Positions 5,301-39,800 of a DNA stretch of 64,000 nucleotides are shown piece by piece. The notes under the pieces were generated by a model that was not told the origin of the DNA, did not search any database, and saw only the letters and a program-made list of their open reading frames with translations. The translations under genes were made by a program, and so were the position numbers. Position 1 is the first letter of the stretch. Each line of letters starts with the position of its first letter. Source of the DNA: Geosiphon pyriformis uo1 (Eukaryota; Fungi; Glomeromycota); NCBI GenBank assembly GCA_016748015.1, contig JAAOMT010000231.1, positions 2,968-66,967 of the forward strand, written 5' to 3'.

Positions 5301-8300
5301 GTTAAAATTTGACCTTTACATTATCTGCAAAATAAACACCTGTTAATTGTTTTTATTTACTGAACAAATTTTCAAAAATAAAGAAAATTTTTATTTTATT
5401 TTATTATTACTTACCATATTTTAATGAATTTTTAATTTAAAATTTCAAAAAAAACTGAATTTCTAAATTTACATTAAACTTATACTATTAAAATGCCAAT
5501 GATTTTTTTTACTAATTTTACTAAGTGAGTTAAGTTTAATTTAGATTCAAAGTTTGTATTAAATATAACTTTTTTTAAAGTACCAGTTTTGATAATAGCA
5601 GTATTAAGAATTTTTTAAAACTTAAAAATAAGAATAATAATTAGATTTAAGTAATAAAAAAATAAAACATCTTTACTTATGTACTTAAACAATAATATTA
5701 TTAATTTTATAAGTTGTATAGTTAAAAAAATTTAATTAATTTAATATTAAAGTGTTTTGTAAGACAATTTTTTTTTTGGCTTAGAAGAAAAAAATTCAAA
5801 TACTATTTTTTATTAAAACTTATTAATAAACAAAAACAGTATTAACAAATTTATATTTTTAAAATAAACAATAACATATTATTATAAGTTAACAGATTTT
5901 TAACTTAATAAGAATAACTTTACTAAATATATTAAAAGTATATTTAGTATTATTATTAGAAATTTATTAGAAATTTATTAGAAATTTATTAGGAAAAAGA
6001 TTAAAAATACAATAACAATAAAAATAAAAACAAAGCTAAAAGCCATGACAATTTTGTAATTTTAAGTATAATAAAAATAGATTTAGCAAATACAATTTCG
6101 GTGATAATATTTCAAGGCTTCTTAAAATGCAAGCTTTATATAATAGGTATTTTAATGCTACTAAAACTATACAATAATTAGAATACAGATCTAATATAAG
6201 CTTAATTTAATTTTGTGAAAAATATTAAGTATTAAAGTAAAAACTGTTCATTCAAAAAAATTTAATTAGTAATTGTTTTTAAGTATTATTAAAACTGACA
6301 GCATTTCTAAAAAAATTACTTTAGTGTTTATTTTATGATTAAAAATTAATGCATGAATTAAAAATATTTTTGGATCGAAGGAGTAATTCTGTAAGATACA
6401 TATGGCTTTTAACAAGTAAAGATTAAGTTTTGCAAGATAGAAATTTTTATAATTATAAGGAAGACTTTTCTAACCGTTATATATGATATATTTTTATTTT
6501 ATTTTTTCCTTATTTGTACATAAATATTCGAAAAGCTAACATTGCAAACATAGTATGTATCTCTTTAATAAAAGGAATTTCACAAAATTCTAAACACTTG
6601 TGCATTAAAGTGTGAAAGAGTTTACCGAACATGAAGATATTTTATTTTACTTGTTAGTATCATAAATTACAAATATTACATATAAATTAACTATAAATGA
6701 TTCTAGTGATGGCACGTTTTTATACTTTAAAAGCTACTATAATATATACAATTATTTGACATCTTGGATTGATTCAACCTGAAAACTCAGAAATAACAGC
6801 AAGGTAAAATAATATTTGGAATCCATGTAGAAGTACTTTCATTTCATAATTATTCTCATGATTCTATCCTTATAATAGCTATTCTCTATATTAAAAAACT
6901 CAAATCACCTCCCTTTATCGTCCGAAGAAAAAATACAGCTATAACAATATATCTTATGATGAATGGCTCTCTGATTATCCTAAATATGAATGATGTAAAT
7001 TTCTAAAATTTATTTCCTTCTCGATTCCACATATAAGCTGTTATAATATTAAGTTATTGCAAACCATTTGCTTTTTAAAAATATTCCGAATTCATGCGTA
7101 TGCTATTTTCTTATGTCTATTTTAATTATCCTTTCGAGCCTCATATTGGCTGACCAACAATACAAATATCTCTTTGTGTCTTCTTTAGCTGCAAAAAGAT
7201 GTTCAGTTTCCGCCGCAAGAAAAGCAAAGTATGTTACAAGAGTTAAATAGCCTTAACATTAAAAAGAATTATAACATAGAGATACATTATTAATCCTTGA
7301 TAAAGCTCAAAACTAAAGAGATTGATAAAACATAACCTTCTTTTGAAACTGGATGAATACTATTCTATCTATATTTATTTTATATTGATTCTGACTCCAG
7401 TTTGAACTAATTCTTTCTCTAGAAATAAAAGTCACGAAATAAAAAATAAAAATAATAAAAAATAGAGAAGCTCAACTGTATTGAATATAATTATTCTTAA
7501 CTGAAATCATTAAATGTGTCCATCCACCATGTTTCATAAAATTCATATCTATATTCGAACGCAGAGATGAAAGCTTGTCAATTGCTTATCTTTCAGAATA
7601 TAAGATGCGCTCATTTACTTAATCCAATACTAAAAACTTTCAAAATAAGTTTTTGCATATTATGAACATTAAATCCTATAACGTCTTTAAATTCTTTGAA
7701 AATAATTTCAAGACATTAATTACATGATAATGTGTTGCAAAATAAGCCAGCATATCACTATTTTGGGCTTTTTTGTCAATTATTTCTTTGACTGTTTTAT
7801 TTGAAGGGATATATGTTAAAATATGATAGATATTTATGACAAGTATACTAATGAGGCTTTGCAAGGTACTCTTGTATGTGAAGTTTTGATTTTCATTCAT
7901 TCTATAATGGAAGAATTTTCAGATAATAACGCATAACGTAGTATGAGTAAGAGAGAGAGATTGAGCTAGTATAAACCCAAAAGGCCACCTAGAATTTAAT
8001 GCTTATGCAAATTTAAGACTGTAGAGTATAGTTGATAAATCATAAATTGCAATTCACGAGATTAAGTATAAGTAATTGAAATCAACAATAATATCTGCTA
8101 ATTTAATTATCAGAAAAATAAACAATGATGATCAGCTTATAAATCAATTATTTGATAAAAATCACAAATTCCAACACTTTGAATTAAAATATTGATTAAT
8201 CAATTATAAAGAGAGTTTCTTTAGCATTAAGGTTTGACTTTCATAATATGATATTATTTACCGCTTCAGAAATTAGTGTTAATATTTATATTTCAAAAAT

Positions 8301-11300
8301 TCGGATTATCAATTCTTTTAAACGGGTAATTAGAAATGAGCTTTAAAGTATGTTTTCAGAATTAAAAAATTTAATTTTGGCTGTTTTGAAAGTAAGTAAC
8401 GGAAACAAATACAATTTTTTTTTTAAACTATGTTTTAAATATTCTTACCTTTAATACTTGCTGCGAATTAAGTATTGGATAAAATTTAATTAGATAAAAC
8501 TTCTGTCTAAGAAATTTATTTTAAGCAAGCAAAAAATATAAAATGCTTAAGTCAAATTATTTTAATAGCAATATTTTTATTATCTTTTAAGAAATTTTAT
8601 AAAAATCAAGTTTAAATGTAAAGAGTATGATATTTTAAAAATATGTAAAAGATTTTATTAAATTTGAAATTTTTCTTATTCCATAAAATTATATCATACA
8701 CTTACTTTTAATCTTATAATCATAATAATAATCATAATAATCATAATAATAATAATAATAATACTTCTTTTTAATGAATAAACATTAGTAAACCTAAATG
8801 TGTATAATAAAATTTTATTAAATCAACAGTTTCGAACAAAATATTAATTAATATAATGTTATAGTAGAAAAAATAAAATAAAAATTCTATGATTTGATGA
8901 GTCTCATGTTGCTTTTATTTAAGATAGAAAATTGGGAATTTGAAATAGAGTGAAAAAAAGCTTACAATATCGAATATAGTGTAGTAAAGTTTGATTATTA
9001 TTGGTTTTTTTGTCATAATCGAAGAAATTATAAATTCAGAAGCCTACATTAATGATTTATTAAATTAATTTACACTTTATATTAACAAAATGATGCTAAT
9101 TATCAAACTTCTAATTATACTACTTGATGATTTTAGATTGGATAGCTCTTAGGAATCTAAACAGAAAACGTTTCATAATAAATAATTCGAAAAATTTAAT
9201 AGATTTTAATATCAAAAAACAGATAATATTAATTAGTATATAATACAAAAAGAATGGTTCCAAAATATTTTAGGCCTTTTTCACTAGATTTTTTACAAAA
9301 TGTCTTTTGTTTAGTCCATTTGTAAGCAACAAAGTTTATATCCAAAGAATAAAGTTCTGTATTAGCTGCTTTGCCTATACATTAAACACAAGTGTAGCAT
9401 TATCTACTGCTGCTTGTATAAGAAAATTGATTAGCGTGTCTTCATATGAAAATTATAAGATATCCCATATCTGATTCTGTGCAAATATAAAGTAAAATTA
9501 AAAAATGAGAGCAGTCTTAAACTTTAAAACTTTGTTTTTACTTTTTGGTTCCCCAATATAAAAAACTTGTTTTTGCATTGTACAAGGAAAAAGACCTTAA
9601 AAAATAATTTTTGATGGTGACACAAATTAGTCAATTCTAGAAAAAGTATTGGTGTATAGTATCAAATTTATTACAAGCGTTAATATTCTGTCTCATTACC
9701 TTATTTGAAAAGTGTTTTAATATGTGGTACCTTATTATATTTTCCCTTTTTAAAAATCTTCATTTCTAAAGATTTTATGCTGTTTGAAATATATTATATG
9801 AAAATAAAAATTTTTAATTACTGCTACCAGGTACCGTCAATTTAGATTGGAAACTTTGAATCCTGATACGTATAAATTAGAAAATTTTGGATTAAATAAA
9901 GTGGATTATTAGAAAACTAAAAATCTTATATAAAAGTTTCTATAATTTTATTCGCTTTTAGCATTAAAATCTTTTTTAAAAATATTTTATCAAATAATTT
10001 GAATATATGAATTCAAAAAAGATGTTTGATTCAAAATCGTTAGACTTCAATATCAACCATCACCTTGAAAAAGGTTGTTTATAACCTTTATGTCTTTAAA
10101 TATTTTAAACATTTCAAGTCATGACTTGATAGATGCAATTTAAGTGTATTTTTCATTTTATTTCTAATTCACTTACATAGATTTTGTACATTATACTATC
10201 TGTGAATCCAATATTTTTACGAAAAACTTTAATTTTTATGATATTTTATTAATTGAAAAATGAAATTCATTATATCAAAAAATATTTCTACTTTGTGGCA
10301 AGTGATACAAAACCAACCATTAAAACCAATATTTGAAAATGAATGATTCGTTAAAAATTTATTAACCTTCAGTCATACAGCTCTATCATAGAAGTTATTT
10401 TTAATAGTCATTAAAAATATTTTTACATAATTTATATTCTGAATAAAATAAATACATGTACATGTGTTTGCATTTTATAATCTATAATTATTTAAAATAT
10501 CTTTTAACTACACAATGACATATCATCAGATTGATTATTATTTTTTTGTGCGATAAAACGTACATGTATTTTTAATGGGTAAGTGATATAATTTTGTGAT
10601 TCTTTGATTTTCAAACCAACCACAATAATAAAAGAGGGTGATCTTTCGTAATTTTATACATGACTTTTTTAATATATACTGTACATATATATATAAATTT
10701 TTTAAACCACTTGACTATCAACAAGTATTTTTATAATCGCAAATTGTGGTTATAGAAACTCCAATGAAAAATTTTTTATATCAAATAACTTTAAAATTCT
10801 AAAAAAAGATAAGATAAACACATTTATTAAAACATTTTTTTGAATGGAAAATTAATCCGAACTGCTAAGAGTGTAAGTGCAAGTTTAAAATCTTGACTGG
10901 GAAATTTTCAATCTGAAAATTAGTAAAAGAACAATATATATCTCCAATTTATGAATTCCTATTGAAAATTAGGAAAAGAAAGAAAAGAGAGAAGCGAACA
11001 AACGTATGTTAATCAAATCCATAATTTTGAAAAATTCAAATCAAAAAATATTCGGCAAGCACTAAAAGTACTTGCCAAAAATCTTCGGGGATTATGAAAA
11101 ATCTTGGCGAAATATTTTCATTTTACAAAGCAAGGGCTCTATTTTTTTTGATTTTTTGACATTATAGACTATAAGAAATTTCCTTAAAGAAAAGTTGCAG
11201 CAAACAGCAAAATTATACTAGAAACAAACTACCAGTAACTTTGCGTATAATTAATGACCCAAAAAACGTTTTTGAAGGCATATGACATATATCAATAAAA

Positions 11301-12783
11301 GAAGAGATTAATTTCTTTATAAAGTTTTTCGAATACTTTGTTTAAAGAGCGTTTCTCGATTGGCAAATTACAAGAAAATAATGCAGAAAATCTTTGCTTT
11401 ATTGTTATCCGAGTTTTTTAGCTTTAAAACTGATAAAGTGTTTGTAATCATACACAATTATCCAAAGAATATTCTAATCTTTTTCGTTTAGGCACTCACT
11501 TTTTTTGAGTTTGTTACATCTGGTTCAAAACCAGCTGCCAAATGCAAAAGCGGTATGGATTATTTTTTAATTCATTATTATTATTATTATTATTAAAAAA
11601 ACAATATTTACAACCTGCAGCAACTGACAAATTTATGGTCAAAACGATGTTATGCATCATACAATTCTTGAAGTTTCCAGAAAGAACTCGTTACAAAAAT
11701 AATTTTTTTATCAAGTTAAAAAACTCAACTATATTTATACCCATTCCAATAATACCCAATAATAATTAATTTTTCCGAAAAATTTATGATTAGCTAATGT
11801 GTACAACAAACACGTCAATCTGTAGGGTCAATTAGCTTGCGTGATTCCAAATTCTGAATCGCTAAATATTAAAAATCCTTTCATAGTTCACGTATGACCC
11901 TATGTAATCTCTTGGAATTTCAAAAACGAGATGTCTCACAATAATATTAAAGATATAATGGCGCCAAAAGTTGGTACATGTAATTGAAAAATGTTCATAT
12001 TGTGCACTTTTATCCATTGTTGTACTAATTCTACTTTCATGATTTGCCAAAAATCAAAATGAAAATCTTACCATAAACGTCGATTGCTTTTTTTACTCCC
12101 TTTCTGTTATTTGATGTTGAATGATGTCAAAATTTTAATTAAGTTGACGATCTCGGATAGGTTCCCCCGACAAAAGAATAAGCTCGGTTTGGACTCTGGG
12201 CTTCCATAAATAGATAAAGAATCCAAGAAAGATGAGATCATAAATTCTGCACTATTTTGGTGGGATCAAGTGTACAAAACAACCCTTTGAGAAACATGCA
12301 ATAACTTTAAATTTCGCATTGTGACTCCAAAAGAAATTAAAGGTTACTTGAAGGAAAGAAGGCCACAAAGTGAGTTGGTCAATTTACCCAAGAATAGGAA
12401 TCAAAGAGTACAAATCAGGTCGTGTTGCATTCCATGTTTGTTAATAGATCTATGACTGACCTTTTTAGAGGCCGAATAACTTGTGGGAGTCTTTATACAA
12501 TCATGCTTCAAAAGGTGTTGTTACGCGAGAAAATGTCGCCGTGTACCAAGAAAACTTGATCGATTTTGGACAAAGTACATATTAGGTTAGTGATAATTTT
12601 ATCTCATACATAAGAAATCCATAAAACCATTTTGAAAGTTTTACGATTCTGCGTCTGTTAATGGATATTTGTCCATCCCGTTCGTTTCTTGGTCTTTTTT
12701 TTATAGAAACATAGTTGAAAGTTTAATGACCCTGCCAAGACTTCTTTAAATTTATGAGAAAACGGATTATTTACGAGATAAAA

Positions 12784-14780: not shown

Positions 14781-17700
14781 TAATCTCGACTATAAACATT
14801 TTCCAAATATAATTAGAAAATCCTTTTTATTGAGTTGGGAAATTAATTGCGGCTAAATTATTTTAACAGCTAATAAATAAATAGCAAACATGTTAACATT
14901 CACTGATACTTTTTTGTAAATGGTTTGAAATTTATCCAATTCAGTCAATATATTTTATATTGATTCATGTGTCACGCTTTATGAAAATAAATCACATATT
15001 TTTAGATCAATGACAATTGTGGATAATTGAGAAAAAAACACTTGAATTTTAGATAGTTCAAGCGATAAAGTTTATTTGAAACGGAAAAATCTCGAAATGA
15101 TTGTGTTTAAAATTTTCACATTCGTTCAAAACAAAAAAAATCTATATTTTAATTTAATTTATATTAAAGAGTATATGTTTAAGTACCAATCAAAAATTTT
15201 CATATACAGTTTATGGTATTTAATTTTCAAAACCTTGACTTGTGTGACCTACCTGCATATATTTTTATTCCCTGTTAAGCATCTCAAAACACAAAAGGTA
15301 AAATTCAGAAAAGTAGACTTTTTTAAGGTTATGCATAGAATCCCTGACATTTCAAAATCTTTTAAATTTATTATTATTATTATTATCAATATAGATTTTT
15401 TTAACATTGGAAACATTTTTTCCAAGTTTGAATCAGATTTATCTTCTTCTTCTTCTTCTTCTTCTTATTATGATACTGAAAGAATAGACTTTGCAGCAAA
15501 ATATAAAACAAACTTTATATTATTAATTGCAACTAAAACGTTAAGATTTTCAATTAAACCGAACATAATAATCTTACAAAAAAATTTTATTTATATATTT
15601 ATATAAAATAAAATTTGATTTGCCATTCATCTTATTTATAAAAATATTTTTGTTTTGTTGTTCAAGATTAATTATTAAAAGCTATTGACGCTGGTTTTTT
15701 TTGGTTACAATTTTAATAAAAATCTACATCTTTGATTACTTTATTCAGTCTAATGAATTTATTTATTTATTTATTTATTTTTATTTATTTGTGTGAACTA
15801 AAAAAAAAAATAGCCTCATAAATGTGTTTTTATGATTACCCAGTGTCCAAAATAATGGTACCCCAGTTTTAAAAAAGAATATTCAAGTAATCTTGCTTAC
15901 GCTATATTTTTTTAAACTTTAATTTGACGTGAAAATGAAATAATTTTTTTCAAGAGTTTCTTCATCAGAATTTACTGAATATGAAATTTAAGAAAAACTT
16001 CTTCGCAATCAATGTCACCAAAAAGAGAAAAATAGAGGTTAGAACTGTTAAAAAAACATGTCTTTTATTTAAATTTTTGTAACGTGGTCAACTATTGTAT
16101 TGTAAAAATTCGCTACAGCATCAGAATTTGATAATAATACAAATTATTCATCCGAATCTCCAAAATCTTGTGTCCTGTTAACTGAACAATATATTTATTA
16201 ATAAAAACGGGTAAATTAAATATTGCAAAAATTCTTTGCATAATTTTTCTAACGTTAATTGGAGATTCAAGAAAAGCTATATCGGCATATGTGTGCCGCG
16301 CTTTGGACGTTGGAGATTTAATCTTTACTGATATTGCTATATTTACTGGATGATTTTAAGAGTGAATCAAAAATGCTGAGAGAAAGATTTCCCGAGCGCA
16401 TTTTTTTTCTCTATCCATTACAGTCCTACAATTTCTGCCTTTTTATACCTCGGAACTTCCGATTCTATAGACTTTACCACCCCAGCTACGTATAAGCTTC
16501 ATTTCGAACAATGACACACATTTCAAAATTTTCTGCTTTGGCTACCAGATGTTGGCTAAATCAATAATAGAATGAATTCGGTTGACGAACAATCTTTGAT
16601 TCTATTTATTTATGTTTATTAATATCTAAACAATAAATAAAATTTAATAATTATTATTTCACTAATTTCGATGCAATATTTAAAACTCATACCTGTAAAC
16701 ACTGCAACATTTGTATCATAAGTAAGAGGGATGCAAAAGTTATTTTGGAATGTGGACTGGGAAGTTGACAGATATCCACAAGTGTCCAAAAGAAAATACC
16801 AGGTGCCGCTTGCCCTATTGCATAAAGTTCGCAATGTAAACCTCCATGTCTGTTTCGGCTACCCAATGTTCTTAAACTCTATGTTTTGACATCTTTTAAG
16901 ATTTCGAATAAAATCTCTGAGGCTTGTTTCAGTTTCATCGACGTCATACTTCCATAATACGAATATTTTGTCACGATTTTACGCCACCGACGATATTTTA
17001 TTGCTTCTGAATACCGTTATCCACTGAAATTATTATAAAGTATTAATTAGATAAAAAAAATTGTATTTATAACTAAATATAAAGAGGTTGATTTTATAAT
17101 ATTTGTGCTATATATATTTTGAAACATCTGGTTTTGATTCACTGTCTAAGGTTTAAGATTATGAACTGTAAAATATATTGGAATTATATTTTTATAAAAT
17201 TTTGAACTACAAGGACAAACATAACAATTTAAAAAAATACCCAAGTTATGACTTTGAATTTTAAACGTATGATTTTATATTAAGGCACTTAGTATTATAA
17301 ATAGAAATTTTGAGAATTATTATTTTGTAGAGTTTTTAATTGGGGTTCAAAATGGTAAGAAATTAAATATTTGATTAAAAAAATCAATAATTTATTTTCA
17401 AAATAGTCTGAAAGAATTCAACAAGGCCAAAAGTTTTTATGTCAAATGAAATAAAATTTTTGAACCATAAAATTTACAGTTTTAATTTTCAAAAAATTGA
17501 TAATTATAAGAAAATTTTGTTTAAAAAAAGCCTTTTTTTCAGAAAATGTCCAATTTCATTTGAAAAATATTGTTGTATTGAAAAGGTATAATACCTATGA
17601 GTCTGATTTTAATTTCTGTTTGTTTTTTACATTAATTATTTTTATTTTTTATTGTTTAAAAAATAATTTGTTTGGAGACCTTTTCTTTAAATTTATAGAA

Positions 17701-19284
17701 AAGCTTGATTTTTTGGTACATTTTTTAATTGATAATTTTCTTTTATCCCAAGTTATTGAAATTTTGGATCTCAAAGAGCCAGATTATTTTATACTGTTAC
17801 TTGATATAATGAAATTTGTCAAATAACTGATAAATCATGAATGATTTTTATATTAATTTCAAGTTTTGAGATAGATCTTACAAATTAGGATTGACTAGTT
17901 TCAATATCACTCATTTTATTGTAACATAGATTCAGATTTCAATGTTTCATGTTAAGAATAAGAACTATCATTCCCAGAATTGATTAAAAAACAAAGCAAT
18001 AAAACTAAATCTTTTTTGGGGTAAGTCTTGATTGCGATTAAGAGGCAGTATCCTCCTTGCAGAATGTATAGCAAAATACTATTTTCCCGGGATGATATCC
18101 TCACTAATTTTTTGCATATTTTATAGGGACAGAAAAATTATGTTACCAAAAAATTCCTGGAAAACCTCTACACAAAATAACAGGTCTAAGAAAAATAATG
18201 TCCCGAAAGAAGAATCGTTTCGAGGGTCAATTTGAAATGAAATTGAAGTCAATCGACTAGACTCTTTTGCGGAAATGTTTCAACATACTATTAAAGAAGC
18301 CTGGGAAGGGAAAAAGGGCTTCGTTCTAATTATGTGGATTTAGTTTATTTAAAAGAAGTTAGTCTTTACATAGTAATGTCTATTTTTTGAATAGATTTTA
18401 TCAACGTCCCATCCTCTTGCTTGAAGAAGGTCCCCTAAATTACGTTACTCGTGATCTTGTCCTAGAAGAAAAAGCAAAGCATCCCGAGTCAAAAACAGAT
18501 CCCTCCGCAAATCAGTGTCATTTTGCAAGACCTTAATTTATGGTAGATTATAATCTTAATTTGTATTATCAATTTATATTTATTTTATTGTTAATTAGGA
18601 AGAAGTCGTATCTTGGAATGCCTTTCATCAGTGGATGCAACGATCGTATATCCAATTAGCAGGCGAGATGGAAGATTTTCTATTTCATGCATCAGCCTTT
18701 TACACGTATTAGCCTTTATATAAGTTTTAAATTTCCAAATTTCAATTTTTTTTAATTTTATCGATTAAATATTAAACTCTTTTTAATTACAGAACCTCGA
18801 TAGAAATTTAAATTAATATAATATTGGGGTGAAGAAATTACTTTACTATCAGAAAATAGTAGTTGTTAAATATTTTGAAGTTCAAAACCCAAAATTGTTG
18901 TGTGTATCAAATTTTCGTATTTTTGGGCGTATCCATACTGTTATAATGTACTTTTTAAAAGGTATTTATAATTATTCAATTAAATATTGACAGAAGGTTC
19001 AGAAATTTTCTTATTTTCTAATCATCAAAAAATGTATGATAAAAGCGTTTGAAACAGAAACTGAAACATAATAAATTTAGTATTTTAATCATTTGAAATT
19101 TCAAAAAAAATAATCATTCATTAATACTTCATACGGATAAAAAATTAGAAATTATGTTATTAATATTAAATTTTTCAAAATTCGTTTTATTTATAAAAAA
19201 GTATGATCATAAGTTTTGAAAAGCATATTAATTCTAATTACTGTAATTTTCCACAAACCACCTGGAGTCTGTTCTTTTAAATCT

Positions 19285-19470
19285 TTTGAAGTATTGAGTA
19301 AGACCCAAGAGAGTTTTCTGTGTAAAACTGGTGGTTCTCTCCGACGATGAAATCTCCAATCAGCATAAACTTTCCCTGGCATTCTTGCAGAATGTAAGGA
19401 TGGCGAGTAGCTAAATTCAGAAGAGAGCACCAGAACAAGCAAAAAGTGAAAGACGAAAATCAGGACAACG
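19285..19470 (+). pseudogene. IS607-family serine recombinase (TnpA) fragments
   Basis: VLSKTQE (19291-19311, compare catalytic RVSSxxQ with TCG>TTG); CVKLVVLSDDEIS (19319-19357, compare GVKIVVL); ISINFPWHSCRM*GWRVAKFRRE (19359-19427, compare LLSIIxVFSCRxYGRRxxK). Internal deletions and frameshifts lie between the motifs. Confidence 0.55.
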
Positions 19471-19546
19471 GCAAAATGCAAAAAGCTACGACACCCGATA
19501 GAAATTTCGACCGCACGTTGCTGCTGAAGGCGTATCTCTAACACCC

Positions 19547-20338
19547 TTGAAGACTGGCGATATTAACCTTGAATACCGTAATGCAGTGGAACAAAAGGTA
19601 TTCTATTGTGTTAAAGAAACAAAATGGCATTGTGGAAAAAAATGGCTGAAGCCTATGATGTTTCAACAAAGACGTCTTCTTATTGATGATTTTTTCGGCT
19701 ATTTGGGGCGAATGAAATTTTTTAGAGCAATCGTACATATCGCACGCTATTAAAAAGTTGCTTAGGTTCTGTCCTGCTAATATAACTGATGTGAAGCCAT
19801 TTATCAAGCGCTAAAGTACGAGACGGAATAGTACAGTGACAAGATATGCCAGCGCAACCTCTTTCTTTCCTAGGTCATTGAATCTCATTTGCGATCGCGC
19901 TCAAAATTTTCAGTATCGTAGAATCGTTTTGATGTCTCATATCTTAATGCATGCATATCCATATTGATCCAAGGTAAATATTTTAGTTTTCAGAAAAAAG
20001 ATAATTTCTAGGACATTTTTCAATTTTTTTTATATCCGCACAAAATTACATATTCTCGAATTGATGTCTTTTTGGGTCTATGAGACAAAAAGACAAGTCC
20101 GCGAACATGCAGTCTCTGTTGATCCTGGAATTCACACACCCTTCCCTCTCTAGATGCGTGTCCGTAAAGTGAAATCCACAGAAAACGAGAAAATTATGCA
20201 AAAGCTCCGAAAAATGCTCTGCTGGGCATCTTACCGTTCCCGTCAATCTCTGATCTCCAAGGCCGAGGAGTCAGGACCGTGAAAAACGAGAAATTTAAGT
20301 ATTTGCCGTCAGCTTTGCTCGCTTATTCCTCGACCTAA
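19547..20338 (+). pseudogene. TnpB/Fanzor2-like RNA-guided nuclease relic
   Basis: In order: KWHCGKKWLKP..QQRRLLIDDFFG (19622-19699, N-terminal KIxLxP..Q..L..xFG motif); CPANI..EAIYQALK (19770-19816); HLRSR (19886-19900, compare FRSRK); VSVDPGIHTPF (20112-20144, RuvC-I DPG); GWASYRSRQSLISKAEESG (20220-20276, compare WxHYRFRQxLxxKA); possible DR(D) remnant at 20275-20283. Stops, frameshifts and large deletions are present. Confidence 0.7.
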
Positions 20339-20387
20339 TAAAATTTCACACAAAGATGCCTAGTTAAGCGAGAATTTATAAGCTTGA
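20309..20387 (+). ncRNA. Candidate omegaRNA scaffold remnant at the 3' end of the Fanzor2/TnpB relic
   Basis: CTCGCTTA (20318-20325) is the exact reverse complement of TAAGCGAG (20365-20372). It is flanked by TCAGCTT (20309-20315) pairing with AAGCTTGA (20380-20387, one bulge). The stem overlaps the ORF end, where TnpB/Fanzor guide RNAs are encoded. Confidence 0.3.
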
Positions 20388-21402
20388 GATCAAAAACGAA
20401 ACCGAATCAAATATTATTTTAGTGTGGTTTTGCGTGACTTAAGTTCTATAAAAGATACTTCTAATCGCAAATTTCTCCTGTTAAACATGAAAATATTTAA
20501 GAGCCATTAAATTCATTGATAATTTGAGCTGTTGATATGTTTCTCCATATAGTATTGGTTCCATATGAATTATTGAATATACCACCTTTTCGAACGAAAA
20601 TGACAGAATGATAATAAATTTATAAAATTACATTCAGTTCTTTGGGGTGAGGTTCGGTTGAAATAGGAAGGTGAGAAACTTCAGGTATCTCAATTGACTC
20701 CGCTTTTAGCTGCAATTAATAATGCGAATCCAGCAACATCTGAAAGTGTCGTTTGTATAGTTTTAGATTAAATCTGGGAGAACTGACCTTAATTTTATTA
20801 AATCTGGTTTCTGATTTATATGACAACATTCCTTAAATAAATCAAGCGTGGAATGCGTCATAAAAAAACCAAACTGTTCAGGATTATATATACTTTTTTA
20901 AATATAGTTTACTCAAGGGGACAAACTCATTATCCCAGTCAGATTTCTATTGAATGTAATAATCGGAACCCATCAAACCTTAGAGGCACGCATAAAAAGA
21001 TGAAAGATAATATTATGACTAAAATAAATTGATTTGTTGAACAGGTTGTTTGTTATCGTACAATGGTCGTATGGGTATAGATAAATGTAACATGATTTAC
21101 ACAATATGTTCATTAGATTTGGGAAAATTAAGATAGCAAATGTTTGAAAGAGCAGGTATGATATTCTGATTTGCCAGATTTTCATTACGCTGCAAATAAT
21201 TAACTTCGTTATTTCTTCAAATAAGCAGTGACTTTTTGGATGTCACGAAAACGCGCGTCATGCAGAGTAAAGAAAAGTTGTGGCTGAAACTCGATACCGA
21301 TACGTGTTCCTTCTGTTTCTATCGCTTTTCATTTCCAAATAGTTTTGATAGTGGCAAAAGAATACCCATTAGTGGTTGCATTAATGCCCAACTAACCTTC
21401 TA

Positions 21403-36846: not shown

Positions 36847-39800
36847 GTGGTGACCACACCAGACACAGCAACTCTAGAGTATTACCAGTCAATTTACACC
36901 CACTGCAAGCAAAGATTTAACATTCCAGACGGAATTGAAGTTGTCAAGAAATCAATATACCAATATATTAAAAACTGCATTAACAATTATCTTTTTGGAA
37001 ACTACAACATTTCAGAAGTTAGAAGCAACCTCTACAATAATTTAGTGTACTATTCACAATTGGGAACAGAAGACCTGAACAGTAAAACACTTGCTACCTA
37101 CTTCCAAGAACTTAATTTTAACATTATTGAGTATTGTGAAGAAAAATACCCAGTACAGTCTAAATACTCTTTTGACTTTAAATTAGAAACAGAAACAAGC
37201 AACAAAGGCAAACAAAGATTGAAGCAATACTCAAGAACCACTTCAAACACTTCAACACTACAAAAGACAACTGCCAAACACTTGCAAACACCTGAACAAG
37301 GAACCAGTATCAAATTACCACTTTCTATTACATTATTTCCAATTTCACTTGTTTAACCACAAACACCAAGTTCATCACTTAACCGTTTCTCCAGATCAGA
37401 AGATTTTCAGTCACCTAGAAATCCTACTTAACAACAGGAACCAATATCAACAAGTGCTAATATCATTGATTACTTACAGAAAAACAAAAGTAATCACTCA
37501 GAAAGCTTGGAATGTAAAAAAACTGAATCAGAACCAGAAGAAATTACAGAAAATGAAGAAGAAATGGCAACTGCTTACATTGCAAAAATCCCAGAATTCA
37601 CTAATGAAGACAATGATACCAGTCCTCAAGAATGGCTTGACAAAGTTCAAAAAGCAGGAGATGTCAATGGTTGGATCGCAGCAAGAATGCTCAAAGCAAT
37701 TTTTTACTTTTTCCAAAAAACAGCAGGAGAATGGTTTAAAAACTTAAAAGAACCATTTGATAACTGGCAAACATTTAAAGATGCTTTTCTACAACAATTC
37801 ACTGACAACAATACTTCTATCACTCTCAGAAACTGCTTTCACAATATCAAACAAAAAACATCTGAAACTGTTATAACTTATTTTGGAAGATTTAACAAAC
37901 TTTTCAGACAAATCCGACAATTGGAAACCAATGACTACTATTCTGATGCTCAAATTCTGAATCAGTTTATAGCAGAGTTAAAAGACAAACTGATTAAAAA
38001 AGTCCGTCCACATGCTCCAGCAGACTTAGCAACTGCTATTAGACATACAAAGAGCTATGAAATGGCAATGGAAGAAGCAAATCACACCAAGCTTGTAAAT
38101 CTTGCAATTGGAGAAACCAGCTCAACAGTTGAAGAAAAGATAGACCAACTCACAAAAAAGATTGAAAGCTACTTCACAAACCAACAACAACAGCAACAAC
38201 AACCACAAAGATATCAACTCTCACAATGACACAACTAAAACAATTTTGGATTATTATCCAACAACCAACCTCAAAATTGTCATTATTGTGGAATTTCAGG
38301 ACACTGGAAACAAGATTGTAAGAAATTACAAAGAGACTAACAAAACAGAAGTAATCAACATTACTCTTCACCACAACAATCATATTACCAATCTCCACCA
38401 CCAACCTATTATTCACCAAGATCACAAAATCAAAACAGTTACTATCTACCAGCTCCACAATCAATGCAGCAACAATATCAGCAATCTTTACCAATTCAGC
38501 CATATCAGACACCACCCATTTAACAATATTAAGTACCAGCAAGAAAATTGGTTCAACATAACCAATTCACACCCCAAAATCAATTACAGAGTAACCACAA
38601 CAGAATCAATCCAAATAACCAGTTGGTTCCCCAAAATTCTGGTCAGCAAAGATCCAATCACTATTACACTCAACCCAGTTATCTTACAGTACCAGAGGAA
38701 TCGGATTTTCAACAAACTGCACTTTTTAAAGGTAAAGCTGCAGTGCCAAGATCAAACCCTTTCAACCACACCATTCTACCAACTCAAATTGCCCAAAATG
38801 CCAATCTGTCAGATATATTTCCATTTGAATTTGAAGCAAATGAATCACCATTTCTGCTTAGTAATGCAGCAGTCAATAAACAAAAAGCAATTACTGCTAT
38901 GTATACAGAAGCTACAGTAGAAGGAAAATATATTTGCTTAATCTTAAATAGTGAATTGGCTGGAAGTATCATCACTTACCAGCTGATGCAACAACTCAAA
39001 CGAAACATAGACAGATCAGCTCAAACAGTTATTGTCACAGCTGATAGTATGAAGAAGACTCCAGTAGGAGAAATTGATGATTTCCCCTTTTCAATTGATG
39101 AAATCACCATTCCAGTTAAAGTTCTTGTTATGGATGCACCCCAATACCAAGCTCTAGTTGGAAATAATTGGCTTCTTAAGACCAATGCAAACCTGAACTG
39201 GGAAACTCAAGAACTTAAAATCTCATACCAAGAACAATATACTATAGTACCTGCAATCTGTGGTATCTTTAACAAACAATCAGAAAAAGCCTCAGTATTT
39301 GAATTTGAAAAGGAGAAAGAAATACCACTTACTGAAACCTACATGGCTTTTGGATTAACATCCAATTGGGCTGAAGAAACAGAACAGGAGATTTTTGAAG
39401 AATCAAGAGAATGGAAGAAAGTTAGATATTCTACACCAGAACCACAGAAACAACCACTCTATATTCCACTCAAATGCAAAGATTGCAACAAAAAACTTTC
39501 ATCAATGGGAGCATGTATTTCTCCAGAAGAGGAATATGAAACTCGTACCTATTATTTTTGCAAAACATGCCATAGAGAACGATTTGGATCTTCAAAAAGA
39601 AGTGGAAAATAGGACAACACACCTTGCCTTACATGTGGAGAAATGCTACCAGAAGAATGCAATTAGATTGATGTAGCAATAAGAGGAGGAGTATGTGATC
39701 AAACCTGTTAATATGCTCTATCAATTTCGGAAAAAGTCAGAAGAGGAACACCATTTGATGCAGTATACAACAGTGCTCTCAATAAACTTTACCACTATCC

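Follow-up and report, generated by a model that had tools for sequence, protein, structure and literature searches.

The 64-kb window considered here (64,000 nucleotides of the Geosiphon pyriformis contig JAAOMT010000231.1) contains at 19250-20282, on the + strand, what is very probably a pseudogenised and truncated insertion of a eukaryotic IS607-type DNA transposon. In this type, named IS607EU, a serine recombinase, TnpA, is followed by a nuclease of the Fanzor2 family, and both proteins have left remnants in the window. To our knowledge, IS607-type elements are the only class of eukaryotic transposon that uses a serine recombinase, and the relic indicates that such a transposon, with its own recombinase and a Fanzor2, once flourished in an early-diverging fungus of the Glomeromycotina. 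The copy itself is ordinary, being one of hundreds of dead copies of an already known kind.

The relic and its two coding remnants

The extent of the relic was set by its GC profile, by DNA matches across the genome and by colinear protein matches. The GC content is 38-44% across 19200-20400, against ~19-25% on both sides in this AT-rich window, and no long open frame runs through the block, the longest + strand open reading frame (ORF) of the whole window being 68 codons. An initial annotation, made from the sequence alone, had pointed to this GC-richer block and had listed peptide fragments of a TnpA and a Fanzor2/TnpB nuclease within it; all of these fragments were recovered in the three + frames. 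Intact proteins of relatives served as tblastn queries against the whole window, and all 4,422 of its stop-to-stop pieces were screened with profiles made from natural relatives that are intact. The window was matched at two places only, this relic and a second one at 16359-16569. The proposed colinear arrangement of TnpA and Fanzor2/TnpB was borne out in both kinds of search, with significant colinear matches at 19322-20276 (TnpA E 4e-8, Fanzor E 7e-7). The parts of the relic follow one another as TnpA tail, WED/REC region, RuvC-I segment and the helices before RuvC-II, an order that the alignments indicate to be real.

Within the TnpA remnant, tblastn aligned residues ~154-218 of intact recombinases in two pieces (queries P0003-P0005, joint E 4e-8 to 1e-7), which are the sole significant TnpA matches in the 64 kb. 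The first piece, 'VKLVVLSDDEISNQHKLS' at 19322-19375 (+), corresponds to residues ~154-176 of intact relatives (TKLVVLFDDATSDEHELS), with a possible weak upstream extension to ~19253, where 'NHLESVLLNLLKY' was compared with 'RDRLCRFAFDLIQY' by eye alone. The second, 'CRM*GWRVAKFRREHQNKQKVKDENQDNGKMQKATT' (the asterisk marking a stop) at 19386-19493 (+), covers residues ~183-218 (36 residues, 47-58% identical). Its frame is offset by one base from that of the first piece, and an in-frame TAA at 19395-19397 replaces a Q of the relatives. The top match of the TnpA profile in the window falls here (19398-19538, E 2.5e-6), and the next one, 19298-19411, is colinear with it and by itself not significant (E 0.81). 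The sequence that follows, 'KFRPHVAAEGVSLTPLKTGDINL' at 19496-19570 (+), is probably the C-terminal tail of TnpA with its original stop codon lost, as suggested by weak colinear tblastn matches (P0010, P0012) and by comparison by eye with '..QPHIESQGLSKSP..DGLDEICL' in L002 and L004. Significant colinear similarity to IS607 TnpA was obtained for residues ~154-218 only. A weak HTH_OrfB_IS605 match of L010 (E 0.029), which would have made 19400-19450 the N-terminus of the nuclease, was rejected after comparison with intact TnpA, since the frame in question is that of the TnpA tail.

Because the relic begins at TnpA residue ~137-159, the helix-turn-helix (HTH) and the catalytic serine are gone. 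In agreement, tblastn and profile searches left residues 1 to ~135, with the MerR-like HTH, unmatched near 19250, and the catalytic serine motif Y-x-R-V-S-S-x-x-Q was not found in the window copy. The peptide 'VLSKTQ' (19283-19300), which the initial annotation had taken for the catalytic RVSSxxQ, does not hold up: it lies ~40 bases upstream of KLVVL in another frame, whereas in intact TnpA the distance is ~225 bases (~75 codons), and the position in the window where the motif would be expected (~19100) is AT-rich and without homology. As the residues before ~137-159 are missing from the relic altogether, 'VLSKTQ' is a coincidence.

The nuclease remnant is longer and more broken. The two top matches of the Fanzor profile in the window are 20154-20279 (E 7e-7) and 19968-20150 (E 2.3e-4). 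With the nuclease of the closest intact relative, L064, a 29.9-kb metagenome contig described below, tblastn placed residues 61-250 at 19686-20144 (E 7.6e-6), residues 352-381 at 20190-20276, and the segment with the DPG motif at 20073-20150. A long form of the nuclease gave a single-frame match at 19326-20354 (E 3.4e-10), which is real only to ~20281. Read by eye, the peptides KWHCGKKWLKP..QQRRLL, CPANI, EAIYQALK, HLRSR, VSVDPGIHTPF and WASYRSRQSLISKAEESG align with residues of the intact nuclease, with small frameshifts between them.

From 5' to 3', and all on the + strand, the nuclease remains begin at 19326-19497 with those of an N-terminal extension, which lies in the +1 frame of tnpA and was aligned from 19326 by tblastn with the long forms of L064 and L083. 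It reads 'NWWFSPTMKSPISINFP' (19326-19376) and then 'ECKDGE*LNSEESTRTSKK*KTKIRTTAKCKK' (~19390-19497), and the second of these pieces contains a basic stretch resembling a nuclear localisation signal (NLS), compared by eye with 'AECKEEEPLFTDENARLGKKRKTKIRTTSARNK' of L078. The WED/REC region survives in pieces at 19505-19990, recovered by tblastn with the L064 nuclease and the long form and by three-frame reading: first 'RTLLLKAYL' (the first WED strand, cf. 'RTLLVKAYP'), 'NTVMQWNKR', 'KWLKPMMFQQRRLLIDD' and 'SAIWGE', and later 'RMKFFRAIVHIARY', 'LLRFCPANITDV', 'SHLRSR' and 'DRAQNF', interrupted by several one-base frameshifts, stops and small deletions. The RuvC-I segment, 'WVYETKRQVRE..HAVSVDPGIHTPF' at 20073-20150 (tblastn; profile E 2.3e-4), retains the D-P-G motif in 'VSVDPGIHTPF', its DPG codons being 20121-20129. 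The next ~85 residues, ~255-340 of the intact proteins, are deleted. The last segment, 'VRKVKSTENEKIMQKLRKMLCWASYRSRQSLISKAEESGP' at 20160-20282, represents residues ~340-381, the helices before RuvC-II (profile E 7e-7; tblastn 60% identity over 30 residues), and stops at the TGA at 20280-20282. With the copy ending at residue ~381, the alternative RuvC-II glutamate is deleted, and profile search of 19250-20390 found neither the C4 zinc finger nor the RuvC-III 'RD' aspartate.

The TnpA remnant thus stands directly 5' of the nuclease remnant and overlaps it on the same strand, a layout shared by L033, L064, L078, L079, L081, L082 and L083. The general rule that IS607 elements pair TnpA with TnpB, on which the initial annotation relied, applies as far as the presence of both genes goes; the two are not simply side by side, since the nuclease frame overlaps tnpA. 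This overlap lends some colour to another reading, in which the relic is that of a Fanzor/TnpB nuclease only and the upstream 'TnpA' is a chance similarity or the N-terminal extension of the nuclease: the nuclease frame of intact relatives does cross tnpA, part of 19326-19497 does read as nuclease extension, and a Diversispora copy (L077) has no adjacent TnpA. We consider it very unlikely nonetheless, as the TnpA frame is different from the nuclease frame and yields the window's top TnpA-profile match (E 2.5e-6) besides the tblastn match at E 4e-8, and a recombinase is plainly present in fuller copies of the family.

On the reading as an IS607EU relic, then, the copy has lost the left end and TnpA residues 1 to ~135-155 on its 5' side, the right end and the nuclease residues past ~381 on its 3' side, and further sequence by internal deletion. 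The damage comprises the TAA at 19395-19397, several one-base frameshifts, the loss of residues ~255-340 and the truncation at the TGA at 20280-20282. The initial annotation was right in calling the copy dead, with RuvC-II and the zinc finger deleted; judging by these stops, frameshifts and the end at residue ~381, it would be able neither to move nor to cut, and probably nothing in it is still functional. The range first proposed, 19250-20390, stands to ~20281. The last 110 bases, a GC-richer tail at 20283-20390 to which no strand is assigned, have no detected relation to the family: no DNA match extends past 20281, no profile matches there, and blastn against all fetched loci returned chance matches only, with family homology likewise absent from 20283-20450 in blastn against the family loci.

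Sister copies in Geosiphon and intact relatives elsewhere

The window copy belongs to a large family of repeats. It has at least 53 DNA matches elsewhere in the 128-Mb genome at 65-86% identity, with 19321-20281 as the common part, and a fuller copy has 92 matches in the same genome. Many Geosiphon copies have a sharp right end in common and ragged left starts; they are 65-80% identical among themselves, and all of those inspected are full of stops. The TnpB zinc-ribbon model PF07282 (TNB) has 82 matches in the genome, mostly with stops, and several of these lie just 3' of repeat copies. A census with an intact TnpA found 256 candidate places, of which 147 were scored to give 150 matches, and one with an intact nuclease found 607, of which 93 were scored to give 113 matches; among the places scored, every match covering a long part of either protein contains stops. 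The Pfam Resolvase model, tried as the query for the genome scan, found 3 places only, far too few beside the 150 matches obtained with a close TnpA protein, and was set aside. The homology, the part order, the breakage and the family size can all be read directly in the DNA, and they are best explained by a family that grew to hundreds of copies in the lineage of Geosiphon pyriformis before becoming extinct.

The fuller copies show what the window copy has lost. In L033, 'YGRVSSTKQKEDLERQ..DIGS..NFKRSGL..RDRL' lies directly upstream of nuclease pieces ('CWTHYRFR', 'IIIQNEV.TYKTC'), the catalytic serine motif is kept as 'YGRVSSTKQ', as it is in intact relatives, and the translation finishes in the same 'PIIDVLQSIR' as the right ends of intact elements. 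A 162-residue open piece of L038 matches proteins of 250-270 aa with MerR and Resolvase domains at 36-52% identity, among them the intact TnpA of L064. A TnpA-bearing relic of the family (L074) is also present on the contig of the window, at 157646-158083 (-), ~91 kb past the window end.

The second relic in the window, at 16359-16569 on the - strand, lies 2.7 kb upstream of the first and represents nuclease residues ~366-436 (tblastn joint E 4e-13; profile E 2e-4 for each piece). It reads '..YY*FSQHLVAKAENFEMCVIVRNEAYT' and 'SWGGKVYRIGSSEV*KGRNCRTVMDREKKCAREIFLSAFL', and it keeps the alternative-glutamate motif as 'NEAYT', a damaged zinc finger and the RuvC-III region. As its protein coordinates overlap those of the first relic at 366-381, it comes from a different copy.

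Two Geosiphon 'hypothetical proteins', P0001 and P0059 (G9A89_016616 and G9A89_008719), are models threaded through decayed copies, combining the alternative frame of tnpA with fragments of the nuclease; the relic family accounts in this way for some of the 'hypothetical protein' models of the genome. That NCBI models cross sister relics, and that the GC content of the block has stayed above that of its flanks, could be taken to mean that the relic was adopted by the host, for example as the source of a regulatory or small RNA or as an exon of a gene model. The models, however, switch between frames of decayed copies, as annotation artefacts typically do, while in the window copy no + strand frame is open for more than 68 codons; the copies diverge freely from one another (65-86% identity), and the window has no match to an Rfam family. 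Adoption by the host is accordingly a most improbable account of the relic.

Outside Geosiphon, apparently intact members do exist. The initial annotation had suggested that such copies might be found in this genome or in relatives; this was right for other Glomeromycotina, a chytrid, metagenomes and probable giant-virus contigs, while in Geosiphon the long copies scored so far all carry stops. The named relatives of the nuclease are from Diversispora epigaea, Gigaspora rosea, Cetraspora pellucida, Rhizophagus irregularis and the chytrid Borealophlyctis nickersoniae. The Diversispora copy L077 sits in AT-rich fungal DNA and has no TnpA beside the nuclease. The most informative relative is L064, with an intact TnpA of 258 aa overlapped by the nuclease gene. 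Its TnpA matches NCBIfam NF033518, 'IS607 family transposase', at 153 bits (cut-off 110), as well as Pfam MerR (32 bits) and Resolvase, and its nuclease scores 70 bits on the TNB domain and 95.7 bits on guided_TnpB, slightly short of the cut-off of 100. Among solved structures, the intact nuclease is best matched by the mimivirus Fanzor2 L79 (9b0l; E 4.7e-24, residues 234-431 on 315-509), and the TnpA by the catalytic domains of ISC1904, ISC1926 and IS1535 (E 2e-21 to 5e-14). Fanzor nucleases can be recognised by a DPG motif together with an alternative RuvC-II glutamate that stands six positions ahead of the zinc finger's first CxxC (PMC10711439). This fingerprint, DPG...E-x6-CxxC...CxxC...D, fits the proteins of L064, Diversispora epigaea, Cetraspora pellucida and Borealophlyctis.

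The ends of the element can be located by comparing L064 with L078, a 2.6-kb metagenome contig whose DNA is 79-82% identical to it. This comparison fixes the L064 element at 5890-8157. The left end of the intact elements has two direct 'TGCTTAGTAATRC' repeats (L064 5890-5960; L078 186-260), and the right end has a conserved 'ATTGATGTATTACAATCCATCCG', an identical 23-mer at the very end, with a related 'TGCTTAGTATTAC' nearby (L064 8120-8157; L078 2480-2518). As the right end lies only ~44 bases past the nuclease stop, a guide-RNA scaffold, if any, must sit within the coding region. The right-end 23-mer has no match in the window at up to 3 mismatches. An exact match of the left-end 13-mer at 38855 was rejected, as it falls in unrelated coding-like sequence and such a match arises by chance in 16% of shuffles. 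Rfam searches of the window and six related loci found no family, neither omega-RNA nor RAGATH-like.

The nuclease gene of L078 is broken by a 73-nt AT-rich GT..AG insert (1357-1429); for comparison its spliced model was read at the junction and the exons were compared separately. Removal of the insert restores the frame and the match to L064, which identifies it, by sequence, as a spliceosomal intron within the Fanzor2 of an IS607-type element and places the L078 element in a eukaryote. L064 is a more ambiguous case. A Bacteroidota-type Por secretion tail domain is encoded in its right flank (10350-11351, - strand; 28.1 bits, cut-off 27), and the GC content of the contig rises from ~25-29% to 40-50% across the element. 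With this flank domain and mixed GC we do not call L064 fungal; its host may be a bacterium or a eukaryote, or the contig a chimera. L079 (Logan contig of SRR31320655) and L081 (contig of SRR17222375) carry intact elements in surroundings of 43-51% GC, among genes for a giant-virus minor-capsid P11 C-terminal domain, ankyrin repeats, an RNA ligase and a tRNA. From this gene content, both are probably giant-virus DNA.

It is worth setting out what speaks against the reading of the window copy as an IS607EU relic. The TnpA piece amounts to ~100 residues, two of its three parts are weak, and it contains no catalytic residue. None of the single fragments of the window reaches a curated Pfam cut-off; Pfam searches with the bare open fragments, from the window and from sister copies alike, returned noise only (E 0.03-0.35), so the assignment rests on close natural relatives and not on curated models. 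The left end, the right end and the guide-RNA region are all absent, and 'element' is for this reason a conclusion from gene order. As to the extinction of the family, the census scored part of its candidate places, and an intact copy may therefore still be present somewhere in the genome.

Origin of the family and known IS607 systems

A quick maximum-likelihood tree built from 84 nucleases unites the fungal proteins with L064 and L079 in one clade (SH-aLRT 100), apart from the prokaryotic and IMG/VR sequences. The sister group of this clade is an unresolved polytomy, and because of this the tree points to no particular donor, bacterial or viral. The idea of the initial annotation that the transposon is prokaryote- or giant-virus-derived thus finds no decision in the tree. 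In the RuvC half of the nuclease, identity is 45-50% both to bacterial relatives (Chloroflexota, Synergistota, Moorena and other cyanobacteria) and to those from giant viruses, which puts the two groups at about the same distance. The probable giant-virus copy L079 is nested within the fungal clade, and the presence of elements of this clade among giant-virus-type genes in L079 and L081 hints at exchange between giant viruses and fungi. Alongside the relatives in Diversispora, Cetraspora, Gigaspora, Rhizophagus and a chytrid, this giant-virus copy fits the published idea that giant viruses spread Fanzor2.

Geosiphon houses cyanobacteria, and one might ask whether the relic is recently transferred DNA, from the Nostoc symbiont, Mollicutes-related endobacteria or a giant virus, or contamination of the assembly. 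That bacteria (Chloroflexota, Synergistota, cyanobacteria) and giant viruses provide the closest relatives outside the fungi, at the identities just given, and that L079 falls within the fungal clade, would agree with such a source. The same family, however, is present as hundreds of decayed, 65-80% identical copies on more than 100 contigs of AT-rich fungal DNA, and the window copy itself is flanked by ordinary AT-rich fungal sequence; the family forms one clade with sequences from Diversispora, Cetraspora and a chytrid (SH-aLRT 100), and its close metagenomic relative L078 has a spliceosomal intron. Recent transfer or contamination is therefore hardly to be credited, and we retain the view of an old resident transposon family.

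How a live element of the family would have worked can be pictured from the IS607/Fanzor2 literature. It would have been ~2.3 kb long and would have encoded a serine recombinase TnpA with a MerR-type HTH and a Fanzor2 nuclease, the latter presumably guided by RNA made from the right end of the element. In IS607, the element is moved by TnpA in double-stranded form and integrates at or beside GG, with neither terminal inverted repeats nor target duplications. The donor site left empty is cut by the RNA-guided nuclease, and its repair brings the element back. By analogy, the Geosiphon family may have maintained itself in the same way.

Bao & Jurka reported Fanzor2 from IS607-like elements of eukaryotes and giant viruses in 2013 (PMC3627910), and its guidance by RNA was demonstrated in 2023 (PMC10530073). 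A descent of Fanzor2 from cyanobacterial 'pro-Fanzors' has also been proposed (Yoon et al. 2023, PMC10711439), and a 2026 review names the eukaryotic elements IS607EU, with no inverted repeats, no target duplications and insertion at GG (PMC13565253). The Geosiphon family agrees with IS607EU in pairing a serine-recombinase TnpA with a downstream Fanzor2 nuclease that has the DPG motif, in the absence of obvious terminal inverted repeats and in an element size of ~2.3 kb; its intact relatives also have the alternative glutamate six residues before the C4 zinc finger and the RD motif. The window copy differs in being a dead fragment. Table 1 of Bao & Jurka lists no Glomeromycotina among the hosts, and its fungal Fanzor2 entries are yeasts (PMC3627910). 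We found no paper that joins Fanzor with Glomeromycota or with one of five genus or group names of arbuscular-mycorrhizal fungi, although the supplementary tables of large censuses may include such genomes.

The mimivirus element ISvMimi, with the Fanzor2 L79 (PDB 9b0l), likewise has an IS607 TnpA beside its nuclease (PMC10530073). The sequence match to L79 spans the RuvC/zinc-finger half only, the N-terminal halves not being alignable by sequence, and the mimivirus element is active in a viral genome, whereas the window copy is a fungal relic. As to prokaryotic systems (the bacterial IS607, IS1535 and ISC1904 and the cyanobacterial 'pro-Fanzor' TnpBs), the TnpA of the intact relative L064 corresponds at the level of an equivalog match to IS607 transposase, and the nuclease is 45-50% identical in its RuvC half to the TnpBs of Moorena, Lyngbya, Chloroflexota and Synergistota. 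The fungal-type TnpA is set apart from the bacterial proteins by ~45-60 additional residues at its C-terminus and by a low-complexity linker, the fungal-type nuclease has a basic NLS-like stretch, and one relative has a spliceosomal intron; in the tree, too, the fungal clade is separate from the prokaryotic sequences.

The open +1 frame across tnpA

The intact relatives have one further feature in which the two genes are interlocked over a long distance. In L064 the nuclease frame, which is the +1 frame of tnpA, is open from 6149, that is, for 629 nt before the tnpA stop, and its first ATG (6158) would give a protein of 651 aa instead of the 453 aa called. The same is seen in all six intact fungal-type or giant-virus elements, where the +1 frame runs without a stop through 600-740 nt of tnpA (L064 6149-6777, L078 445-1055, L079 2929-3650, L081 2998-3776, L082 376-1007 and L083 525-1165) and the protein would have 646-651 aa where it is complete. 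The +2 frame of the same tnpA stretch has 4-12 stops. We take the pattern to suggest dual coding over ~600 nt, and regard it as an evenly balanced question whether the nuclease is translated from a start deep within tnpA in this +1 frame; if so, the nuclease may have gained an N-terminal extension of ~150-200 residues by overprinting on the recombinase gene. A programmed +1 frameshift that fuses the two proteins, or a separate small protein, are alternatives that would leave the same signal.

When the tnpA stretch was shuffled synonymously, keeping the TnpA protein and the codon usage, the +1 frame stayed open in 0.6-8.5% of trials per element, and with codons redrawn from the nuclease-only region it did so in at most 0.4%. 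Four-fold synonymous sites point the same way, the divergence in the overlapped part of tnpA and in the nuclease-only region being, for example, 0.09 vs 0.48, 0.13 vs 0.41 and 0.27 vs 0.54 (Fisher p 1e-8 to 4e-4). In fungal-type pairs, divergence at these tnpA sites is 2-5 times lower than in the nuclease-only region, and in the giant-virus pair L079/L081 it is about 2-fold lower; in 15 of 15 bacterial and viral pairs the effect is weaker and in the same direction, and taken over most pairs the tnpA sites are conserved ~1.5-5 times better. In most of 53 non-redundant relatives from bacteria and viruses, the +1 frame contains 0-1 stops across the final 190 codons of tnpA, where 2-7 would be expected. 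Predicted long forms of 491-685 aa, with an extension of the kind 'PYWN..LWLP..SWFS', are already present, unremarked, in public protein sets. The extension is rich in proline and serine, and in fungal-type elements it has a basic NLS-like end (KKRKV, KKRKTK, RKRKN) immediately ahead of the first WED strand. The motifs conserved in the extension do not count as independent evidence, since the conserved tnpA sequence underneath largely dictates them.

We found no mention of the tnpA/nuclease overlap in the searchable literature, which is not proof that it is unknown. If the extension is indeed translated, the N-termini of TnpB and Fanzor2 proteins would have to be annotated differently, and also expressed differently, for instance in applications as compact genome editors. 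In the window relic, decayed as it is, both frames are still visible at 19326-19570.

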